From Dimorphilus gyrociliatus (taxonomy: Eukaryota > Animalia > Annelida): DNA of 64,000 nt. The DNA lies in assembly GCA_904063045.1 (NCBI GenBank), contig CAJFCJ010000002.1, positions 1,168,185-1,232,184 on the forward strand, read 5' to 3'. The notes under the pieces were generated by a model. That model made no database searches and had not been told where the DNA came from. It saw only the letters and a list, made by a program, of their open reading frames with translations. The position numbers and the translations under genes are program-made. Each line of letters begins with the position of its first letter. Positions within the stretch are counted from its first letter, which is position 1. Below, piece by piece: positions 2,935 to 64,000 of the stretch.

Positions 2935-3775
2935 CCAGAAACCAGGTATGCGTTGATCGGAATTGTCCAAAGAAAGATTTGCAATATCTTGCAACAAGCA
3001 TTCCCGAACTTCCGAGCAAGAGCCACGCAATTAGCATAAATGATCCATGTAAAAGTACAAGAGTATCTTTTTTTAGTCCAGTTATATCAACAAAAGTCAA
3101 TAGATTCATTTTTTCTGGTGACATAAAAGGAGATACTGTGTGCTTATGCTTTACTCCTTTTTTCGTTGTAGGACCTCTAGCCAGAAGCAAGTAATATTTA
3201 CTCTTAAAATTTGGAGTATATTTAGCTCCTGTCGTTGTTACGTGCATACTAAAAGTACATTGAATAAAACCATCACTATAATTTGCTTGAAACGGTTGCG
3301 ATAGATCCATTCCTGCATATTTATCTTTCAAAACTCTATTACCAGTTCTCCGTCCACCTGAATTTAAATAATTCCAGGATCTTTGAATTAAGGCGTTGCT
3401 TGATGATTGATTATAAAGACAATCTACTACGTAATTATCTCCCTGAAAATATTATTAAACACTCTTAAACATACTACTAAAGCTATTGGCTAAGGTGCAA
3501 ACCATTTGAGCTTCGTCAGAGAATCCAACAGATGTCCAATGAATACCTGACAAGGCTTGTGATTGCATTTCAAATAAAATAGTATCTGTAGCTTTATGCC
3601 ATCTAAAAGTAATTAGAGATAGGCAGTTCCTTCCATTGCAATTAGGTGGCATTCTGTAGCAACCTTTAATTGAGCCACATCCTTTTGTACTAATAGAAAC
3701 AAAACTACCACCTATAAATTCCAAATAAGGAAGAATTAGAACCAAAACAAAAAGAATTCTTCCCCTTTCTTTCAT
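1980..3775 (-). CDS. DOMON + cytochrome b561 protein (ferric-chelate reductase 1-like, no Reeler domain)
   Basis: Signal peptide, then DOMON (GCYRMPPNC...WTSVGFSDEAQM). The b561 helices carry four His (LHGSFM, VHRALM, AHPIIG, IHRPIG). The last exon ends APIVRS* at 1980. Confidence 0.85.
2890..2928. repeat. (TA)n microsatellite, intronic
   Basis: Direct reading of the sequence. Confidence 0.9.
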
Positions 3776-4440
3776 AATCCTTTATTAACTGTATAATTTC
3801 TGATTGCACTAATACTACTGTAATACGAACCGCCCATTAATTTCAGATAACTCAACTGCAGGCTGATTTTTTTGTCCTAATTGAGGAAAATTTCTCCGTT
3901 TACGTAATAAAGATAATACTAATAAAATGAATAAAAATCTATTGCATCAATTTAGCTAGAGACGTTCTCTTATCACTAGATGAGTAACATTCAACTGAGA
4001 ATTAGACCATCCCTCACGCCTAATAAATCATGAAGCCTCTTGTAGGCTGAAATAGTTTACTTAATAGCAAGATGCTTTGATAAGATTTTTTTATCTCTCG
4101 AGTTTAAAAATATAGTCGTTTAATAGTGACAATGGCGTTTGATATTTAATCTTTTGCCTAATTTGCATATAGCTACTCAGAAATACGCACTATTCGTTGA
4201 TAATTTAATTTCTACTTCTAAATTATGTCAAGTGATATCAATTCATCCGTAATCTTAATATGTACATTACAGGTTAAGTTGAACAAGTAGATCGTTAAGA
4301 TAGCGACCATTTATTTAGGACTAAGTGAAACTCTTATCGTCCACGAACCTCAGTCAGCATAGAGCAATCTTGCCGGGACTTCTACAAAAAAAAAAGAAAA
4401 AAAAGTCAAAGAAACCACTGTAGAAGGAAAAACAACTCTC

Positions 4441-7400
4441 ATGGATAAATTTCTCAAGCTGATCGCTCTCATCAGTTGCTTTTTGCATACAGATAGCACA
4501 AGCAGGGGAGGTATTTCTTTTAATTCCTTAAATAATTTACTTTTCAACTTTTTTGTCTACTTTGCATTTAGCTCCGGAAACAGCTTGTGACGATATGATT
4601 CCACAGCATGTCGTACCACCTCAGACAAGCCCGTTTCCAATGGAATTAACACTCTCTTCGTATATATACAATGAAGGAACAACTATAGACAGTGAGCTAT
4701 CTCCCCGCCAACTTCTGACAAAGAGTTATTAACAAAGAATTCTGTTTATTTCTATTACAGTTACCTTAAAACACAAGAATAATACACCAATTGCTGGAGT
4801 TTTTGCACAAATGAGAAGAGCCAATAGCCCAAATACAACACTTTATGGATCATTTGAAGGAGACAATGACAATTTCAGGACAGCTTGCAATGAAAGTCGG
4901 GCGATTACTCATAGCAAGAGGCTAATCAGTTTAAACGAAATTAAATTTACATGGAAACCCCCTCAAGATAATGCTGATTCTGGTCCTTTGCAACTTTGGA
5001 TTTCAATTGTTCAAGACTTTACAACATTCTGGGTTCAACAGAAATCAAACGTGATAAACTATGTAAGCTTGTCTTTTCGAAACAAAACTATCTTTTATTA
5101 TAATCAATGAAAATTTTATTAGAGTAATGCTTTACCACCAACGCAAGAGATAAGTCTAGCTGACTGTAGCACGACAAAAGACTGTTTTAAAGTACCCGAA
5201 AATTGTGGTAAAGAAGCAGATTGTGATTACTTGTTAACTTGGAGACCTGACAATCAGAGAGGACTTATTAATTTTGAGATAAGTGCAAAAATACCTACAG
5301 ATCAGTTTTGGACAGCAGTAGGATTTTCCAAAGATCTCGATATGGTAATTTTAATTTAAAGATAATAAAAAAAGTATTCAAACTCTTTAATTATTATTAA
5401 ATCACTTAAAAAGGGAGAAGATTCCGTTATTGATTGTTTGGTTAATGCCTCTACAAGTCTAGTTGAAGTTCAGGCGTCCTGGAACGAAGGGAGAACTAAT
5501 GAAGTCCTTAATAATAAGGTGCTTTCGTACATTCAAACTCTAGAAAGATAATATTTTTTGACTGATAATAAACAACAGCTTTTAGGATTAATCCCAGATT
5601 CGATATCAGGGGCTAGGGTCAACGATCGACTTCGATGCCGTTTTCAGAGACAAATCACGATTGCCAGATCAGACACCAATAAGATATACGATTTGAATAC
5701 TGAATATTACGTCTTCCTTGGAAAAGGCATAGTTTTGCAAGATAGTACTAAAATGCAACATTCACAAATTCCTGAAAAGTCAGCTTCAAAGCTATTAATG
5801 ACAACTATAAGAAATGGAACAACAAGACCAGTAATTATTACTTTTTAACTAATGAAGTATATCGGGCTACAAGACTTTAAATTAACTAAAAAACATAATT
5901 TGTAAAAAAGACTTGGCATATCTTCATAAAGAGTGCAACCAAATTTTATAATAGTGTTGATATTGTATTGTTTTATTTACAAATGTATAACAAGTTACTA
6001 TAGATATTATCTTATTTTTTACTCACTAGACCTCTGACCCAAGCCAAGGAATCGATACTCGTCGCTGTGGGTCAGAAAAAGGTTGCTACCGTTATCCCGA
6101 AGGGTGTGAGGAGAGTGTTTGTCACTATTTGCTAACATGGAAACCTAGTGATAACAAGGAAAAGATCGAATTTGAGATAAGCGCTGACGATAGCGATTCT
6201 AAAACAGATTGGACAAGTGTTGCCTTTTCAGAAGATACTATTATGGTTTATACGCAAATAATTATATACTTAACGAATTTATAGAATTCGTTTTCTTCAT
6301 AGGGAGATGACAGTGTCATTGATTGCCTCTATAATTCGGATGATGTTTCTATAAACATTCAAGCATCGTGGAATCGTAGAGTTAAAGATAATGAAGTTTT
6401 AAATAACAAGGTCTTTTTAAAATATATTACAAAGTTTTTATTAATACATTATAACAAATATCTCTATTCGTTAATAGCTTCTAGGATTGGACCAAGATAC
6501 TTTTTTTGGATCAAGAGTTAATGGTCGCTTAAGGTGTAGATTCACAAGATCTGTTAAAGTAGCTAATGATGATCCTGAAGCAAGCAGGGTTTTCGACCTT
6601 TCAGAGCAGTATTACGTATTTATAGGAAAGGGTTCCGCCGTTCGAGGCATAAAGATGAAACACACTTCAATTCCAGTAATATCTCCAAGGAAAGTTCCTC
6701 TAACTGAAATTGGCGATGTCTCTGGATTAGCTAAATTTCCTTTGGTCAAAGCCCATGGCATTTTGATGATTGTTGCTTGGTCATTTTTCGCTAATATAGG
6801 ATTGCTCTTGCCAAGATATTTTAAATTATGCTGGAATAAATATCAATTGTTCAACGAAAAGATCTGGTTTCAAATTCATAGAATGTGTATGATAACTGTA
6901 GTTTTGTGCACTATAACTGCATTTATTGTTATTTTCGTAGAAGTTAAAGGTTTTAGTCAAGGTTCTAAACCTATTATTCATGCCATAATAGGAATCATTG
7001 TAACAGTTCTATGTGTTTTAAATCCTATAATGGCCGTATTTCGTCCACCTCCTAAACATCCAAAACGGCCAATATTTAATTGGCTACACTTTTTAGCCGG
7101 ACAAATTGCTCATATTCTTACAGTACCAATGATATACTTAGCATTCCCATTCGGAAAAGTCTATGCTCCTTCATGGCTAAAATGGGTCTATACAGCAATA
7201 ATAATTCAACACATTTTCGTTGAAGTTCTTTTATTTCTATACAAATACGTGAAAATTTCCCCAAATTCAGGTAAGATAATCATACATATTACATATAAAT
7301 GTACTTATTAAGCTGTAATTTTCTTCCTGAATAGTAAATCCATTGAATGGTAAAGATTCTGACAATCAAGTAGTTGCCGAAGAGGAAACTAAAGTATTTA

Positions 7401-7552
7401 CTCTTTTTCTATTCAATTTATAACCTACTTAATAATCATTTTTTTCTCAACAATTACAGCCTGACAACGTTCCCACTGCAATCATCATGACCTATTTTTT
7501 TATTTTACTTGCCCTAGTAACAACGATTGTTATCACCTTAGGAAGAGCATAG
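4441..7552 (+). CDS. FRRS1: Ferric-chelate reductase 1-like: Reeler + two DOMON + cytochrome b561
   Basis: MDKFLKLIAL signal, Reeler (ACDDMIPQH...ITHS), DOMON1 (WTAVGFSKDLDM), DOMON2 (WTSVAFSEDTIM), b561 (AHGILM, IHRMCM, IHAIIG, LHFLAG). Stop TAG at 7550-7552. Confidence 0.9.
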
Positions 7553-7604
7553 AAAATCTTTAATTATATGCATATGGACGTATATATTAGTATATACAGT
7601 ATAA

Positions 7605-7606
<2 letters not shown>

Positions 7607-7648
<42 letters not shown>
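7607..7648. repeat. (TA)n microsatellite
   Basis: Direct reading of the sequence. Confidence 0.9.
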
Positions 7649-7652
<4 letters not shown>

Positions 7653-8898
7653 TTATATAAATATACGTTCGTTGCTAGATGATTATACAGTTTATTGATT
7701 AGGTTACTTGTGTATTTTATACAAATTTATGTACTTTATTGTATTTTTTACAGAACAATATAAAAAATTTATTCTACGTTGAAGATAACCACTTGAACAA
7801 TTATTAAATCCATTTCTTTGCTTTCCTCCTTGTTTATTAAGATAATAAGAGGTAATGCAAGACAGTATATATATATATATATATAGATATATACAGTATA
7901 TACTGTTATACGTATATATAATACATATATAATTATTAAGGTAACGATATTTATAAAGTAAAAAGATAATGCTAAATTGGCACATCGCCATCTGGTGTTC
8001 TCGACTTGTAAAATAATACAAATACATCCATCAATTCCATTGTAGAATGTCTATTGAAGAACACCTGTAAGTACATCAACTTTTTTACTCAATCTACTAA
8101 AATAAATATATAAATTTAAGGTAATGAGGTCTTTTATGTATAATACATCACGAAGAATTTATAGAAATTGAGATGTTCAATCGAGACTCTCACCTTGAAA
8201 TAACATATTCGATTATTATTTATATAAGTATATTATAATGTTTAATTGATAAAACTAACTAAAGAAAATGAAATTTGAATAATAACAACCATTACGCTTT
8301 TATTAGATTATATAACTACACAGTTCCGTAAGTCGGAGAGCTTATTCAATGAAATATTTAAGCGTAATTCCGTTTGTTATAAATGCTGCATGAATTATTA
8401 ATTATCGAGTTAAAAATTGATTTGCAAAAGTACCCTCCCACCTTTAAAATAATATAGTGAAATTATGCAAGTTGTGGTTATTTATAATACATAAAAATTC
8501 GTAAGAAAATAAAAGGTTATTTTATACTAGCCAAGATTACTAATAATTTTTCATTAATATTTAAAAGAAAGCATAATTAGTCGTTAGAAAAATTTAATTA
8601 TGTTTTTGCCGTGAACTCTACCTTTGTGTTATTAGTTTTACAATGTTTAATACATTTGAAAGGTAAGTCTAGGATAACATTGATGCGTTGTTGCTATGGA
8701 TGCAGAGCAAACGAGACAAAGTAGAAAACCAGAGTTTGCCTAAGATATTGAACGTTTTATATGCAGCGCCACGTTCACTTTTCTATTCATACATCATTAT
8801 TACAAATATTGTACATTTAAATGTGTTAAAAGTCTCATATGGCAATTAAAGGGGTCAAATGACGTTTTGAAAGAATATGAAAAGCGACTGCGTTTCAT

Positions 8899-9390
8899 AT
8901 GGAAGACGAAATCGATCGTGAGCCAGTGAAACTAACCGATAAGGCGTCGTTTCGCGACGAATCGGAATCAATCAGAAGGGCTTTGGAAGAGACTAGGAGA
9001 CGACACACAAAATCTTTACCGTCCGCTAGCGGAAAATCAAAACCAGGACAACTGCAGCAACTACCTGTAACTCCCCATTTACAACCAGAAATGCACAGCA
9101 GACAGCTAAACAGGGCTCAAGTAGGCGATGTGGAGAAGAAGAAATTAGAACCACTTAACAAAGAAATGAAAGTTATGCTCCCTACTATCAATACGTTCGA
9201 TGGACCTCAGTCTGCAAGAACTACTCTACCACCGGTAAGTCCTTCTGATAAAAGAAAATTGGAAGAATTGTCTTACAAAGACAAAGTCAAGTTGCATAAT
9301 AGTGCTCCCAACAGTCCACTTGTAGGAAGATCTCCTTTGAAAACGAAAATTACTTTGGACAGTTCTTCTTTACTGTCACCGAGAAAATAA
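8899..9390 (+). CDS. Uncharacterised 163-aa, probably disordered S/P/K-rich protein (single coding exon)
   Basis: ATG-initiated 163-codon ORF, GC-richer than its flanks, followed by an AT-rich 3' region. No recognisable domain. Confidence 0.65.
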   Translation: MEDEIDREPVKLTDKASFRDESESIRRALEETRRRHTKSLPSASGKSKPGQLQQLPVTPHLQPEMHSRQLNRAQVGDVEKKKLEPLNKEMKVMLPTINTFDGPQSARTTLPPVSPSDKRKLEELSYKDKVKLHNSAPNSPLVGRSPLKTKITLDSSSLLSPRK

Positions 9391-27900: not shown

Positions 27901-29118
27901 TATATATGTATATGGTCTGATTAATAGATTCTAATTTATCATTTGCCTCTAAAACAGTTTGATTTCGATAACCAAATGAATGATGATGGCACGTATGTAG
28001 ATGCTGAGGGAAGATATCGCGATAGAGATGGAAACCTGATTATCAAAAGAAATGTTATTCCCGGACCTGTAAGTATTTACCGTATATAGAAGAGAGATAT
28101 CTGTAAATATTTGCTCTATTTTTTATTCAGCGTCCCACTCAAGAAGACTATAATCAACATCATGGAAATGATGAATATGGAAATCAGTTGTACAATTCAA
28201 ATACTGGAAATTCTATGAGTGACCCCAACTTTGCTAGAGAATATCAGGTAAATACATATGTCATTAAGAGCATCTTGTGCAACTCGCATTTATATAGTGG
28301 AGGTTCCCTTTTTATTATTACTCTAACACTCGCCTTGGTATGTTGCGTAAATTTGCGCCACGCTTTATAACAGCCTCGGGATAACGCTGCTGGAAGAGAT
28401 GATAATTTGCCGTACGTTCGAACGGAAACTAGAACAGTTACTTATTCTCGCGAAAATGGTAATGCTGATAATAACTTTCCCGGAGCGGATCAAATGATTA
28501 CGTCGCAAACCCATTCTACCCGAACATATATGATGGAAACTACGACGGTAGGTGGCTGCGCTTTGTACACCCAAACTAATTTACTACCTCCTCGCATGTT
28601 TTTTGTTTGTTTGTCGATAGTCAATTGTAAATATTCTATTTCCTATAAGGGTTTTTGTTTTTTTTGAAAAGCAGACTCGTTCTGGCCCAACTGGACCATC
28701 GGTAGATCAAGTGGTCGGTATTTTAGAAACAAAAGAAATATTTAACGCCTATCCTAATTAACTTACCCAGCTTTATTTGATTTCACTGATCTAAGATTTT
28801 GATCAGTTTATAGCAAAAAGTTCCTTTACAATCTATTGTCTTCCTTGTCTAGTACAATGATCAATTTCAAAATAATAATTCTCTTCCACATTTTACAGTA
28901 TCAAAGAGAAAGTGGTCAAGTTGGACAACAAGTTAATATTCAATCATACAACGAGGATGATGATGAACAGGTAAGAATACTTAACATTTCCTCTAGAAAT
29001 TGCTAAAAATTACATCTAATCCATTAAATCATTTCAGCAATTATTGGATGCAATCCGTAGTGTTACAGAGCTTAATTCAGATATGACCGTAGAAAAAGTC
29101 GTAGTAAAAGATGGTTAA
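21960..29118 (+). CDS. EPB41: Protein 4.1 / coracle (FERM, FA and 4.1 C-terminal domains)
   Basis: FERM ([57 protein letters not shown]), FA (YSGRTQ), CTD ([22 protein letters not shown]). The first coding exon at 21960 is inferred from a phase-0 join. Confidence 0.93.
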
Positions 29119-54505: not shown

Positions 54506-54948
<443 letters not shown>

Positions 54949-55356: not shown

Positions 55357-56811
55357 ATGGGTAAGTGAAGTACTAGCGCATACACACTTTCGTTAAAATT
55401 AAGTGGCGATACTAACCTTGGATTGATGTTTTAGAGGAGAAAAACAGGCCATGCCAATTACAGGAAGTGAGCATAAAAATCAAAGATGAGAGGAAGACGG
55501 AATCTAAGACCGTTGATATTGATATTGGATGCCTGAAATTAACCAACCTACCCCAATCTCAACAATTCCTAATTTTAACAATTGGAGTTATGCTGTTCTA
55601 TTTAATTTATGGTTATTTTCAAGTAATCTATTCAATAACTTGTTTCACTTATGAGATTTACATTAATTATTCATATTCCTGACGAATAGGAATTAATGTT
55701 TAGGCTAGAGGGGTTCCGGCCATATGGTTGGTATTTAACTTTAATTCAGTTTGGCTATTATTCAATATTTGGAACAATTGAATTATATTCAAAAAAGACA
55801 ACGAGAAGGAAAGTTCCTCTAAAGACATATTATTTTCTGGCATTTTTGACAGTAGCCACTATGGGTCTATCAAATTCATCACTCGGCTATTTAAACTATC
55901 CCACTCAAGTAAGTGAAGAGAATGCCACACCCCCATTTTTGTTTAAAACTTTAATTTATAATTACTTTTAGATCATATTTAAATGCTGCAAGCTCATTCC
56001 TGTCTTAATAGGTGGTATAATAATTCAAAAGAAAAAGTATACAACACTTGATTTTGCTGCTTGTGCCTGTATGAGTATTGGTCTCATCTTTTTTACTTTA
56101 GCTGATAGCAGTGTTTCACCCTCTTTTAGCCTTTACGGTATGAAAAATAACCTATAGAATTACTATATATATTTGTATTCATCTTGTATTTGCGCTTTAC
56201 TAGGTCTCATGCTCATATGCTCAGCTTTGGTTGCCGATGCAGTCATTGGAAATGTTCAGGAGAAAACAATGAAAGAGTTCTCATCAAGCAATTCGGAGAT
56301 GATACTCTATTCATATTCAATAGGCTTTGTTTATATTCTTTTTGGTCAATTGGCGACCGGACAATTTTGGAGTGCCTTCTCATTTTGCTGGCAACATCCT
56401 TTTCAAACATATGGTTATGCGCTAATCTTCTCATTTACTGGATATATAGGTCTAGTTGTTGTATTGAGCTTAGTAAAATCTTTTGGAGCGCTTATAGCTG
56501 TAACTGGTAAGTAGTTAAAGATGATATGAATATTTAAGTTTTTGTGCTTTTAGATAATTAGCTAGTAATTTTCGCATTATCTTACAGTGACTACCTGTCG
56601 GAAGGCTATTACAATTATCCTGTCGTTTATGTTCTTTACAAAACCTTTTACACCGCAATATATATGGTCGGGAATAGTTGTTGTTCTGGGTATTTACTTG
56701 AATGTCTACAGCAAGAATAGAACATCTTGGGATCGAGCATTTGTTAATTTCTATCATCGATATTTTATTAGCCGACGAAGCTTTTCAGATTCAGTTCAAA
56801 ATATTGTTTGA
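55357..56811 (+). CDS. SLC35B3: PAPS transporter 2
   Basis: FYLIYGYFQE, GWYLTLIQF, SLGYLNYPTQIIFKCCKLIP, ADAVIGNVQEK, VTTCRKAITI. The first coding exon is just ATGG. Confidence 0.95.
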
Positions 56812-57002: not shown

Positions 57003-57898
57003 ATGGCGACGGAAGAAGTTTTTGAACCTAATATCACGCCGGAACTGATCTTAAAATGTAAAAAACAACAGGTAGTATCTCTTGGCGATCGCCTAACATA
57101 CTTCTCAAAGAATTCAGGAAATAACCGTGAAAAGTAAATTTATTTAAAACTAGTTGAAGCCTATTTTCTTTATCAATTACCGGAAACAGATCTACTATTC
57201 TATATGAAGATCTGTTAGATGCAAAGATACACAAAAAAGAAGTTACGATAGGATTTATTCGACGACATAAATCGAAAAATATCTTAAAAGTAGATAAAGT
57301 ATCATTCCATGAAATTGAGGGTAGCAATGAATGCACTGAGTTTGTTGACAATGTGTTATCTCGAGCTAAAAACTATTGGCAACGTCGACCTACAAAATTG
57401 AAGGTGATAGTTAATCCTCAATCAGGAACCTTAAAAAAGGGTGAGAGAGTTTATAAAGAAGTTGTACAGCCAATCTTTGAATCAGCTCGCATTGTTTGCG
57501 AAACAGAAGGTAAGACGATTAAAAGTATACATTTGTTGTTTTTTTTTTTGCATAAGTTTAGAATTGTTTAAGTGACTCAAAGTCGAAAGCATGCCCAAGA
57601 AATTTTATCAAAGTGCTGTCTAAATGACTTCGACGGGTACGTCGATCTGATGCAGAATTTGCTTAAAGCTTTAACTTTCGCAAAGTCTTTATTTTGTTTT
57701 AATGCTAGAAAGCTAACAATCGCATAAAGTTAATAACATGCCAGTAGCAATATATATATATGTATATAATAGAATAGAAAGATTCTATTTTCATAGGCTT
57801 CTACTTGATTAGATAACTTGTAAAGTTGCACTTTTAACGTCTAGCAGTAATTTATATCTTCTTTTGTTGTTGTTTTTTTTTTCACTCTCTCATTCTCT

Positions 57899-57943
<45 letters not shown>

Positions 57944-59543
57944 TTTCAATTTTGTCAATCAGGCCATAATAGATAAAAAATATAGTTTTATACTACATTT
58001 ATTACGTACTAATTACTAATGATAGGATATTTTTAGGGTTGTATCGGTTGGTGGAGATGGTACCTTTACAGAATGTTATAATGGAATGATATTAAATCAA
58101 ATGGCCTGTGCTAAGCGTGACATTAATGATCGAAGAAGTCAACTTATTAAACCCCCTATACCAATTGGAATAATACCTTTGGGTTAGTTAATTAGGATAT
58201 TATTTAAATCATAGATAATTTGAGAAAATTTTCCCAATTGAAGGAAGCGGCCAAGGGTGCATAAAAATGGCTATCGGAAGTGTTGATGTAGTAACAGCTG
58301 CATTGCATATTGTCATCGGTAGGTACATGTACATATGCGCGTAAATTAGAGTAATGAAAAAATGATATAATTTGACTCTAATTGCGCCTTATATCCAACA
58401 GGTAAATCTTTTTCCGCAAAGGGCTACTCAGTTCACAGTGGAACGAAGCTCGTCTACTACGGGAATCTTTTGTTCGGCTACGGTTTCTATAGTGACCTAA
58501 TTGAGGAAGGAGAGAATAAACGTTGGATGGGTATTCTACGTTACGGTTTTGGTGGTACGAAGGCATTCTTTAAACATCGCTTATTCAAGGCCAAAATACG
58601 AGTTTTACCTTGGGGTTCAACGCCGAAAGATGGCGCTCTAGATTCGAATTTGAACAATGATCACGAAAAAGAATTTACTGACGAATTTTTTAGTGTAGAA
58701 ATGTATCCCTTTCTCTTTCCCCTTGTTGACCGTCAATTGGAAACCTATTCCCTTCCTCTGTGTAGTCTGTATATGCTAAGAAGTTGCTCAAGAATCGATC
58801 ATTTACAGTTGTTGGCAAAGTTAGCTAGAAAAAAGGACGATACTGTAAGTTTATAAAGAGGCAATTACGTGGGCGGTAGATAGATAATTTTTAGCTGCTA
58901 CTAACAAAAAATTTTCACACGCTTATCATTCACAAATTGTAAGATTTATATATATATATATGCAACATATTGTGGAAAGTGTAACACTGGCTAAGCTCAT
59001 TGTCTAAAAAAAAATATATACAGTATATATATTAGTATATATATTAGTATATAAATATATATATGAACACAATATACACAATATATTGTACACATGAAAA
59101 CGCGCCTGTTATGTCGAGGTAGTGGGTTGTATAGTTGACAGAAACATCAAGCATAAGGAGAACCGTACAACCTACTGGCTTTACTTAACTGAGCGTTCCC
59201 TCTTCGGTATTCATGCAATTAAACCAAAACGACTAATTATCTAATCACAATTTCATTAGCGGTAAATATATATTTATATATATATATATATAAACATTTT
59301 TCTCTTTTTTTCTTTTTACAGTACAGTTTTGATTTCGTTAAGTCTTTTGAGGCGGAAGGTTTCAGCCTCGCAATTGAGCCAGATCCAGACAATCGCGAAG
59401 AAAATAATTCCATAATCATCAATATCGATGGCGATCCATTCCCTGTTAAGAGAGAAGACGTAATCCATGTCAAAATGTACGCTGACATGATAGATATTTA
59501 CGGACCTAGCGCCAGCTGGAATGAAATAAAAGAATTGATGTAA
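57003..59543 (+). CDS. CERK: Ceramide kinase-like lipid kinase (PH-like + DAGK catalytic)
   Basis: RPTKLKVIVNP, VSVGGDGTF, IGIIPLG, AALHIVIG, GYGFYSDLIEEGENKRWMGILRY, NIDGD. Confidence 0.85.
57883..57940. repeat. (CT)n microsatellite in a CERK intron
   Basis: Direct reading of the sequence. Confidence 0.9.
59101..59195 (+). ncRNA. let-7: let-7 family pre-miRNA hairpin (intronic)
   Basis: 5p arm CGAGGTAGTGGGTTGTATAGTT (59115-59136) matches let-7 at 20 of 22 positions. The 3p arm CCGTACAACCTACTGGCTTTAC (59163-59184) pairs with it. There is a lower stem and a GGAG in the loop. Confidence 0.93.
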
Positions 59544-60312
59544 TCATTTCAAGATTATTATCGAATAAAATAAGAAAAAGCTTAGATTTAAACATTGTTG
59601 CATGCTTCGTAAATTGATAATTATCTACTCGTCTCAGACATGCGACAAACAGCGGTCGCTCCGACAATTAGCGTTCTTACGGTAGTTGAACGTTAAGCGT
59701 TTCGGACGTCTGTCGCCCTAGTTGGCGCGCGATAAACCTTCAAGAATGGATGTCAGACAAACAACGCAATTAAAAGTTCAGACTAATTATTCCGCTCGAC
59801 GGGAAGCGTTTATTACCTAATCAGTGAGTCTGACGCCCCGGTAAAAACGACAAAAGTAAGTGTATATTTTACGCGCGTGAGTCGGCTTGAAAACAATCAG
59901 AGATGAAGCGCTCTAGGAGAAATCGCATTAGAAAATTGATTGCATTTCGCGCGCTGAAAGCACAGTAATAAAATATCTCGCTTAATCAAGGAGAAGCTTG
60001 TCTATTGACACACTGATCACGCTAGTTGCATTCTTCCACCACTTACCTCTTAATTAACGAACTAATCGCGTTTTAGAAGCAGAATAGAAAATTTAAATGT
60101 TGCGCATTTTGGCGTTTTAGTCCATTTTTGCATCAAAGCACGTAAATGATCAAGCGCTGATTGGCCCGCTTTCTCATTATGCAAGATTTTGGGCGGAGCT
60201 ATCGGAGACGTTTGCACGGTGAAAAAAGAGGAGAGAGTAATTCGTCCGTGATCTGTCTAAATGAACAGCACTTGTTGACTAGCGACGTCTTTTCTATATT
60301 TACTTATTCGCC

Positions 60313-62039
<1,727 letters not shown>

Positions 62040-62214
62040 GAAAATAAGGAAATAGGAGAGGAAGTAGAAGAGAACTTTTACTGTTCATATAAATTGTACA
62101 GAACAATTCCCCCCATAAGACATGCATATCTATATCTTAAAATTATCCTCATATTATGTAATATACGGTGTATATGCTTATTAAATAATCTACCGTGTAC
62201 GATGGAGCATACAA

Positions 62215-62217
<3 letters not shown>

Positions 62218-62256
<39 letters not shown>
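62218..62256. repeat. (TA)n microsatellite downstream of Bsx
   Basis: Direct reading of the sequence. Confidence 0.9.
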
Positions 62257-62259
<3 letters not shown>

Positions 62260-64000
62260 AGATATCTCTATAGTATAAATATAGTTATATAAATATATGT
62301 ATGGTATAAACAAATACAAATATATTTAATACACTTGTTTCAAAAAAACTGTATAATCTTATTAAGAAGGGTGTAAAGTCGATTAGGGACGCTAATTAAT
62401 CGTGAGCTAAATTAATTCCTTCTTTTAACTGTGCATTGTGTACATAAATACATCTACAGGACAATGCTTAGAAGCGGAGTGGTACGATTAAATTAGCGCT
62501 TTTTGCCCGATTCGTCTTTGTTTAATTAGGGAATTTTCTGCGCGATTAAACTAATTAGGACGCGTTTTACGCGGGTGTTCCGCAAAATTACGGTCGTGTG
62601 AAACGAAATCATACATATACATATAAGCACGCAAACTTTTACATAGACATTCGCAATCGTTAATTAGACGTTCAATTACGACACCTAGCGATCGTCGTTC
62701 GAGGACGTTCGTGTCAAGTTGCGTTCGCCTCTTGAAAGGATTCGCCATTTACGGACCGGCGCCTAAGTGAAATGATAATAAATTGCCGTAAATTGGGCAA
62801 GAAGACTCTTGCTCCTTTCTAATAGTTTCTATGTAGGTATTTATAGATTGAATATTCAACTTCTTATATTCTTTCGACTTAAAGGCAGAAAAATCCTATT
62901 GCGATCGCTTAAACGAAATAAACGACAGTAGGGAAAAAATGACAAGTGTACAAACGCCTCAATCAAAGCTTCTAGTCACGCGACCGCCAAGAGCTTCTCC
63001 ATTCTCCGACAAACCTAGTTTACGCAAACTCAATTACTTCTCATCACCGCCATTCACAAAGGCAGTCGCCTACAAAAATCATGAATCGGCCAACGTTTGG
63101 GACTCATCCTCTTTCCTTGTCTTTGTACACACCGCAATTAAGTACGATTATGTTATTTAAAGCAGTAATTGCCTCGTCATTTGTGCGTTGAATTTCTCTT
63201 TGCACTTCCGAGAGAAGAAGTAGCCTTAGGGGTTTTATATATCTATAAAGCAATATATAAACATATGCAGAATGGCTCGTAGAAGAGTTTAATATGCGTA
63301 GAAATGTTAGAAAATCAAATATTACATCTTTTCCGAACGTGTTTTTAGACAATGTACCTCTTTTATTATATGCTACTTAAGTCTTTTCACAACTCGTACG
63401 AGCTTCTCAAGCGCCTTATTCTTATCTCAAGTAAAGCTCTATTCTACTTCATTGTATCTCCTCCTTTTTCTATCTTGATTCCATATAATCTACACGAGTG
63501 TAAGTGAACGTACTAATCCCGTTCAACATTAGGAAATTTACCCACTTTAATAGATCTGCGTTACCAAGTTTTTATAACAGTAATCTTTACGAATTGTATT
63601 ATGCAAACAAGCGTTTTCCCAATAGAAAAACGCAACAGAATCAATTAATTAACAATAATTAGTTAGTAAATACAGTACATATACTTATCATTATTATTAT
63701 CAAATTTGTAAAACTTTTACATTTCGCGTACACATAAACACCCACACGGACGCCATATTTGCATAAATAAAGATATACGTTTGCACTGATAAATGATCTG
63801 TATGTGTATTTAAGTTATTAATTAAACATATCACTCATGTATAATAGTGTTTTTTACATATGTACACAGATAGTTTAAATGCAAAAAATACTATACATTG
63901 TTATATATATAGATATATATATATACTAAAATAGATACTATATTACAATAGAGAATATGTAACTAAACGCATCTACAGATGCGCTATATATTAATATATA

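Follow-up and report, generated by a model that had tools for sequence, protein, structure and literature searches.

A Hairpin in an Intron of a Lipid Kinase Gene

The window, by which we mean the whole stretch of 64,000 nucleotides that was analyzed, contains a protein-coding gene on the plus strand with an intron of 477 nt (58845-59321, GT..AG, phase 0) in front of its last coding exon. Open frames flank it on both sides, the second continuing the first. The exon on its 5′ side (58371-58844, plus strand, 5′ boundary approximate) is predicted to encode the C-terminal half of a lipid kinase of the DAGK fold, and the last coding exon (59322-59543, plus strand, stop codon included) carries on the frame of exon 6 in phase. 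A stem-loop (59099-59197, plus strand) lies within the intron in the orientation of the host's sense strand, so that the intron of about 477 nt and the sense orientation reported in a preliminary description of this DNA are both confirmed. Between the 5′ splice site and the hairpin lie 254 nt, and another 124 nt separate the hairpin from the 3′ splice site; at these distances a mirtron is ruled out.

The host had been described as a ceramide kinase, a class that we define by an N-terminal PH_CERK domain together with DAGK_cat and CERK_C. Pfam searches with single exons recovered DAGK_cat on the exon at 58026-58184 (29.1 bits) and, weakly, DUF7493. The Atlas neighbors of the exon at 58371-58844 are DAGK_acc, YegS_C, and CERK_C, and the Atlas clusters near two of the host exons comprise DAGK_acc, YegS_C, CERK_C, and PH_CERK (scores 0.83 to 0.93), CERK_C and PH_CERK appearing as Atlas neighbors only and at the low scores of 0.83 to 0.86. 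The best solved structure found in a PDB search was sphingosine kinase 1 (E = 0.18). Judged by these matches, the host should be regarded as a DAGK-fold lipid kinase, and this part of the earlier naming stands; ceramide kinase is a plausible identity, which the Pfam, PDB, and Atlas matches leave unproven.

Typical introns of this genome measure about 60 to 100 nt. The hairpin-bearing intron contains an AT-rich simple repeat (59012-59067), and another unusually long intron of the host gene (about 380 nt, 57644-58025) consists of CT/TC-rich simple repeat throughout. Upstream of the host gene lie an exon for a NEDD8-like ubiquitin fold (54784-54948) and, after it, a gene resembling SLC35-type transporters (55467-56811). 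Just downstream lies a homeobox gene (60313-60420 and 61821-62039) with an eh1-like N-terminal motif, FLIDDIL, and a homeodomain ending in RRMKHKK.

Sequence, Fold, and Family Assignment

We assign the stem-loop, which comprises a basal stem, a duplex, and a terminal loop, as the predicted pri-miRNA of a let-7 family gene; the assignment draws on its fold, on a match to the let-7 model of Rfam at 59109-59188, and on its counterpart in a related worm. Placing the ends by the let-7 register, we predict the 5p guide CGAGGUAGUGGGUUGUAUAGUU at 59115-59136 (plus strand; CGAGGTAGTGGGTTGTATAGTT in DNA letters). It is identical to canonical let-7, UGAGGUAGUAGGUUGUAUAGUU, at 20 of 22 positions, the seed being exact (GAGGUAG, in DNA GAGGTAG) and the only changes being U to C at position 1 and A to G at position 10. 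The predicted 3p (star) arm, CCGUACAACCUACUGGCUUUAC (59163-59184, plus strand), pairs with the 5p arm and also starts with a C. Between the arms, the terminal loop (59137-59162, plus strand) carries ACATCA (59144-59149) and a GGAG (59157-59160) that aligns to the GGag of the Rfam consensus. Beyond the hairpin, CTTC at 59202-59205 (plus strand) follows the predicted 3′ Drosha cut by 18 nt and would act as a CNNC-type motif, CNNC 3′ of the Drosha cut being a known processing motif (PMC11701709).

The minimum free energy of the hairpin is −34.5 kcal/mol (z = −3.44 against 200 dinucleotide shuffles with a mean of −23.0), and none of the shuffles (0/200) folded as well. Its pairing register is that of 17 other let-7 hairpins, with covariation in the basal stem, and all 20 duplex pairs of the resulting 18-sequence consensus are formed or replaced by wobble in the window hairpin. 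One such wobble, in mid-duplex, joins G10 of the guide to a 3p U. C1 is unpaired, as is U1 in other 5p guides. The well-paired hairpin and the guide with its kept seed, C1, and G10 were thus correctly recognized in the preliminary description.

The let-7 model RF00027 matches the hairpin over model positions 1-84 of 84 with 47.8 bits (E = 8e-9 for 501 nt searched, 8e-8 for 4.9 kb searched). This is below the gathering score of 53.5, and a scan at the gathering score returned no match in the whole window, nor in 20 let-7 loci from metagenomes. At a permissive threshold, scores of 36 to 48 bits were obtained for seven good let-7 hairpins of other animals, the majority with miR-100 or miR-125 as a neighbor, and the hairpin of the related worm scored 44.9 bits. 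Because genuine clustered let-7 hairpins also fall below it, we consider the gathering criterion too strict here; the 47.8 bits of the window hairpin, at the upper end of the 36 to 48 bits, are therefore typical of genuine let-7 genes of this type.

Two further matches were set aside. A second occurrence of GAGGTAGT, at 28583-28590 on the minus strand, is taken as a chance match (about 0.84 expected; the let-7 model does not match there), and a weaker, minus-strand match to mir-3596 (39.9 bits) reflects let-7 read in antisense.

Conservation of the Stem in a Related Worm

The product of the exon 5′ of the intron has two relatives (P0001 and P0002, 82 to 84% identity), which come from other samples. 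Two Logan contigs of two different samples, L036 (5.8 kb) and L037, contain the host exon, an intron of 402 nt, and the last exon, all from a related worm. The host exon is 84% identical between the window and this worm, the orthologous intron occupies L036:2082-2483, and the last exon, from L036:2484 on, has 76% nucleotide identity. The reading-frame segments on both sides of the intron at 58845-59321 are thus conserved in the relative. Gene order is conserved as well, the homeobox gene downstream being syntenic in L036 (L036:5400-5618, Pfam Homeodomain). We considered whether L036 and L037 could belong to the same species as the window or reflect recent introgression, and an identity of 51% at fourfold sites argues against both.

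The orthologous hairpin lies in the same intron (L036:2287-2385), and its 5p arm reads CGAGGUAGUGAGUUGUAUAGUU. C1 and G10 are both retained; the single change in the guide, G11 to A, gives an A-C mismatch. The preliminary description had named base-call error as one way in which these two letters could mislead. Finding the same letters in the hairpin of the relative therefore excludes such an error, and C1 and G10 are real.

Between the window and L036, identity is 14/16 in the 5′ basal stem, 21/22 in the 5p arm, 20/22 in the 3p arm, and 12/13 in the 3′ basal stem (26/29 for the two basal strands), which amounts to 67/73 (92%) for arms and basal stem, versus 15/26 (58%) in the loop. In the flanking exon, third codon positions are 60% identical and fourfold sites 23/45 (51%). 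An identity of at least 67/73 has a probability of 8e-10 against the third positions, and stem and loop differ with a Fisher P-value of 2.7e-4. Both changes in the 3p arm of the relative keep or improve pairing, one turning a mismatch into A-U and the other U-A into U-G. The CTTC at 59202-59205 is unchanged amid an otherwise altered stretch, and both worms have a U immediately 5′ of C1. For C1 alone, a single site compared between two species, conservation does not reach significance. The pattern is that of a processed microRNA, and we read it as a sign of strong purifying selection on the stem. The hairpin had been suggested to be a relaxed let-7. With the stem conserved between two divergent worms far above neutral sites and loop, we therefore reject this suggestion, and likewise that of a decaying paralogue. 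C1 is probably a derived state common to two dinophilid-like worms.

Positions 10 to 12, which include the site of the G10 wobble in the window and that of the position-11 mismatch in the relative, form a region where bulges, wobbles, and mismatches are known to help position Drosha (PMC11701709).

The GGAG of the loop had been described as LIN28-type. It is present at 59157-59160, but its position is not conserved: at the homologous place the loop of the relative reads TGGGT, and its own GGAG sits on the 5′ side of the loop (within L036:2325-2350). Each of the two dinophilid loops thus has exactly one GGAG, at nonhomologous places, on the 3′ side of the window loop and on the 5′ side of the other. 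The probability of a GGAG arising by chance in the shuffled window loop is 0.106. The presence of the motif in both loops could be coincidental, or the motif may have turned over while LIN28 binding was selected for.

Two other parts of the intron were also compared. Its start (58845-58925, the first ~85 nt) is about 80% identical to L036:2082-2165, versus 51% at fourfold sites, and about 55 nt past the 5′ splice site it has a perfect TACTAAC box (58899-58905). Possible roles for this block are that of a short intron, nested or alternative, and that of an element controlling either splicing or the processing of the pri-miRNA. Toward the other end, ACTAATTATCTAATCACA (59232-59249, plus strand) contains two CTAAT boxes resembling branch points, 75 to 90 nt before the 3′ splice site; it is identical in the relative at 18 of 18 positions and would function as its branch-point-like boxes suggest.

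G10 in let-7 Genes of Other Animals

Metagenome contigs were scanned for the 19-mer GAGGTAGTGGGTTGTATAG, and 35 contigs were returned. In 34 of them (L001-L030 and L032-L035) the 19-mer lies inside a let-7 hairpin with the guide UGAGGUAGUGGGUUGUAUAG, the first letter of which is U in 33 contigs, A in one, and C in none. The remaining contig, L031, has the 19-mer without a visible 3p partner and was taken as a chance match. Many of these contigs, to judge by their names, may be host DNA from projects on the symbionts of marine gutless oligochaetes.

In these animals, G10 is carried by the let-7 with cluster partners. Contig L032 has the full series on a single strand, miR-100 first, then let-7, then a perfect miR-125 (mir-10-family model, 44.7 bits); the cluster spans 3369-9344 on the minus strand. 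miR-125 lies 2 to 4.7 kb downstream of let-7 in L009, L020, L023, and L030 and about 200 nt downstream in L004 and L014, and a miR-100-like hairpin is found 260 to 660 nt upstream of let-7 in L001, L016, and L025. The miR-100-like arm of two of these contigs (L001:7654-7675; L025, minus strand, position 379 of the reverse complement), which lies 260 to 310 nt upstream of let-7, has kept its seed and is changed at positions 9 to 13 (AACCCGTAAAACTGATCTTGTG); from its sequence it looks like a derived miR-100.

The G10 hairpins share with the window hairpin guide positions 2 to 20, including G10, and the same fold, and most of them also share the ACATCA loop motif and a GGAG before the 3p arm. As RNA, the common loop motif ACAUCA supports the homology of the whole precursor. 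The G10 hairpins differ in their first letter (U in 33, A in one) and in standing beside miR-100 and/or miR-125. The host lipid kinase was not found on these contigs by tblastn with the host exons. Their 3p arms also differ, reading ..GCUAGCUUUC or ..GCUAACUUUC where that of the window has ..ACUGGCUUUAC; over a longer stretch, ..CCUACUGGCUUUAC in the window stands against ..CCYGCUAGCUUUC in the G10 contigs. Because of this difference in the 3p arm, G10 may have arisen independently in the lineage of the window.

We conclude that A10G is a widespread state of clustered let-7 in other animals. G10 had been counted as a sign of relaxation, an interpretation that does not survive its occurrence as the normal state in clustered let-7 of at least 34 contigs from other animals. 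A full-text search of one paper library found none in which the G10 guide is printed, as RNA or as DNA.

Absence of miR-100 and miR-125 around the Hairpin

The ancestral cluster has miR-100 upstream and miR-125 downstream of let-7, on the same strand and at distances of a few hundred nucleotides to a few kilobases. No seed-anchored match to miR-100 or miR-125 was found in the window, which covers 59 kb upstream and 4.8 kb downstream of the hairpin, and the mir-10 and mir-125 family models had no match at E ≤ 1 in 1-59011 or 59068-64000. Patterns and covariance models thus agree with the preliminary description, in which neither partner had been found in the window. Neither was found on the 5.8-kb contig L036 of the relative, and there is accordingly no miR-100/let-7/miR-125 arrangement of the ancestral kind at the locus, in the window or on this contig. 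The 4.8 kb downstream of the hairpin are occupied by the last host exon and the homeobox gene, and a primary transcript shared with miR-125 therefore appears very unlikely. The earlier characterization of the microRNA as solitary, following a break-up of the cluster, is established only within 59 kb upstream and 4.8 kb downstream.

Alternative Explanations

Among the alternatives, the one that fares best holds that the locus is a let-7 paralogue with a shifted seed or a changed arm choice. Its guide would start at the U at position −1 (UCGAGGUAGUGGGUUGUAUAG, seed CGAGGUA) or be taken from the 3p arm, and its targets would be changed. The U at −1 is the same in both worms, yet it is variably C, G, A, or T among other let-7 hairpins; mature miRNAs strongly favor U at position 1; and with a lower stem of 14 to 16 nt, a cut one base lower is geometrically possible. 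Against this reading, C1 lies 22 nt from the loop in either species, the CNNC lies at +18 from the cut that a C1 start implies, and C1 is unpaired like the U1 of other 5p guides. A guide taken from the 3p arm, which itself starts with C, would gain no advantage in loading. Moreover, miRNAs with a 5′ C exist. We consider a seed-shifted or re-sorted paralogue unlikely. The same low standing is given to its wider form, in which let-7 of dinophilids has split into several dispersed, intron-hosted paralogues, and the conserved 5′ C after a conserved U brings about either a shift of the seed to CGAGGUA or altered loading or sorting by Argonaute. If true, it would mean sub- or neofunctionalization of let-7 in a miniaturized animal.

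Less probable still is a promoter of its own for the let-7 unit, which would lie inside the intron and make transcription independent of the host gene. Two features are such as a promoter might show: conservation above neutral sites in the first ~85 nt of the intron (about 80% identity to the relative), and, upstream of the hairpin, repeats that are AT-rich and TATA-like. The conserved block, however, has splice-type signals (GTAAGT and TACTAAC), a simpler account of its conservation, and the hairpin lies on the sense strand of the host.

That the hairpin is a nonfunctional, drifting duplicate while a canonical clustered let-7 is active elsewhere is hardly credible, for although the two changes from the canonical guide, the Rfam score below gathering, and the lack of cluster partners nearby would suit decay, the stem is 92% identical against 51% at fourfold sites and 58% in the loop, the 3p substitutions preserve pairing, and the Rfam score is as high as for genuine clustered let-7 hairpins.

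Discussion

We propose, as the likely explanation of these observations, that the locus is a functional let-7 microRNA gene housed in a long intron and oriented like its host, a DAGK-fold lipid kinase gene that is probably ceramide-kinase-like. On sequence grounds, it has the marks of a genuine, intron-hosted let-7 family gene under selection, with a 5′ C specific to its lineage. The hairpin would be transcribed together with the host pre-mRNA and cropped by the Microprocessor, aided by two conserved elements, the basal stem of ~14 nt and the CNNC located 18 nt beyond the 3′ cut. Cleavage by Dicer in the let-7 register would come next, and the 5p arm would enter Argonaute. Since the seed GAGGUAG is unchanged, the usual let-7 targets should be repressed.

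The Argonaute MID pocket should bind a 5′ C less well than U. The 5′ C would not pair with targets, and most likely it only lowers or tunes Argonaute loading. Among mature miRNAs in general, 5′ U is strongly enriched and C disfavored (PMC11701709). MirGeneDB 3.0 covers the species, the miniature annelid Dimorphilus gyrociliatus, from its genome only, as small-RNA reads do not exist (PMC11701709), and the locus is therefore probably already catalogued there.

Compared with canonical let-7 (PMC3384580), the window copy has the same seed, 20 of 22 guide positions, a guide on the 5p arm, hairpin size, and pairing register, and it also has the loop GGAG at the consensus place and an unpaired first nucleotide. 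It differs in having C rather than U at position 1 and G rather than A at position 10, and in lying in an intron of a protein-coding gene with neither miR-100 nor miR-125 in the 59 kb upstream or the 4.8 kb downstream, whereas tight clusters are retained in the annelids Capitella and Platynereis (PMC3384580). Departures from the cluster are known from other animals. It is broken up in nematodes and flatworms, and in chordates, new let-7 loci were established in introns of HUWE1 and WDR82 (PMC3384580). Like the window copy, the chordate loci lie off the miR-100/miR-125 cluster and in introns of coding genes (Hertel et al. 2012, PMC3384580); the host gene is a different one, and the annelid case would be of independent origin. 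The dispersed let-7 genes of nematodes and flatworms are likewise unlinked from miR-100 and miR-125 and carry substitutions outside the seed (Hertel et al. 2012, PMC3384580), while the window guide is changed at only two positions.

let-7 is the textbook invariant microRNA, and its cluster the textbook conserved microRNA cluster. Intronic let-7 copies of chordates keep U or A at position 1. The present locus indicates that clear purifying selection on a let-7 copy is compatible with a first nucleotide other than U, and that such a copy can reside within a protein-coding gene, in one of its introns and at a distance from both miR-100 and miR-125, in an annelid with relatives that have retained the tight cluster. 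With A10 to G widespread elsewhere, position 10 is less invariant than is usually said. The locus thereby refines the known picture and does not imply a new principle. It offers a natural test case for the weight of the 5′ nucleotide in the Argonaute loading of a deeply conserved guide.
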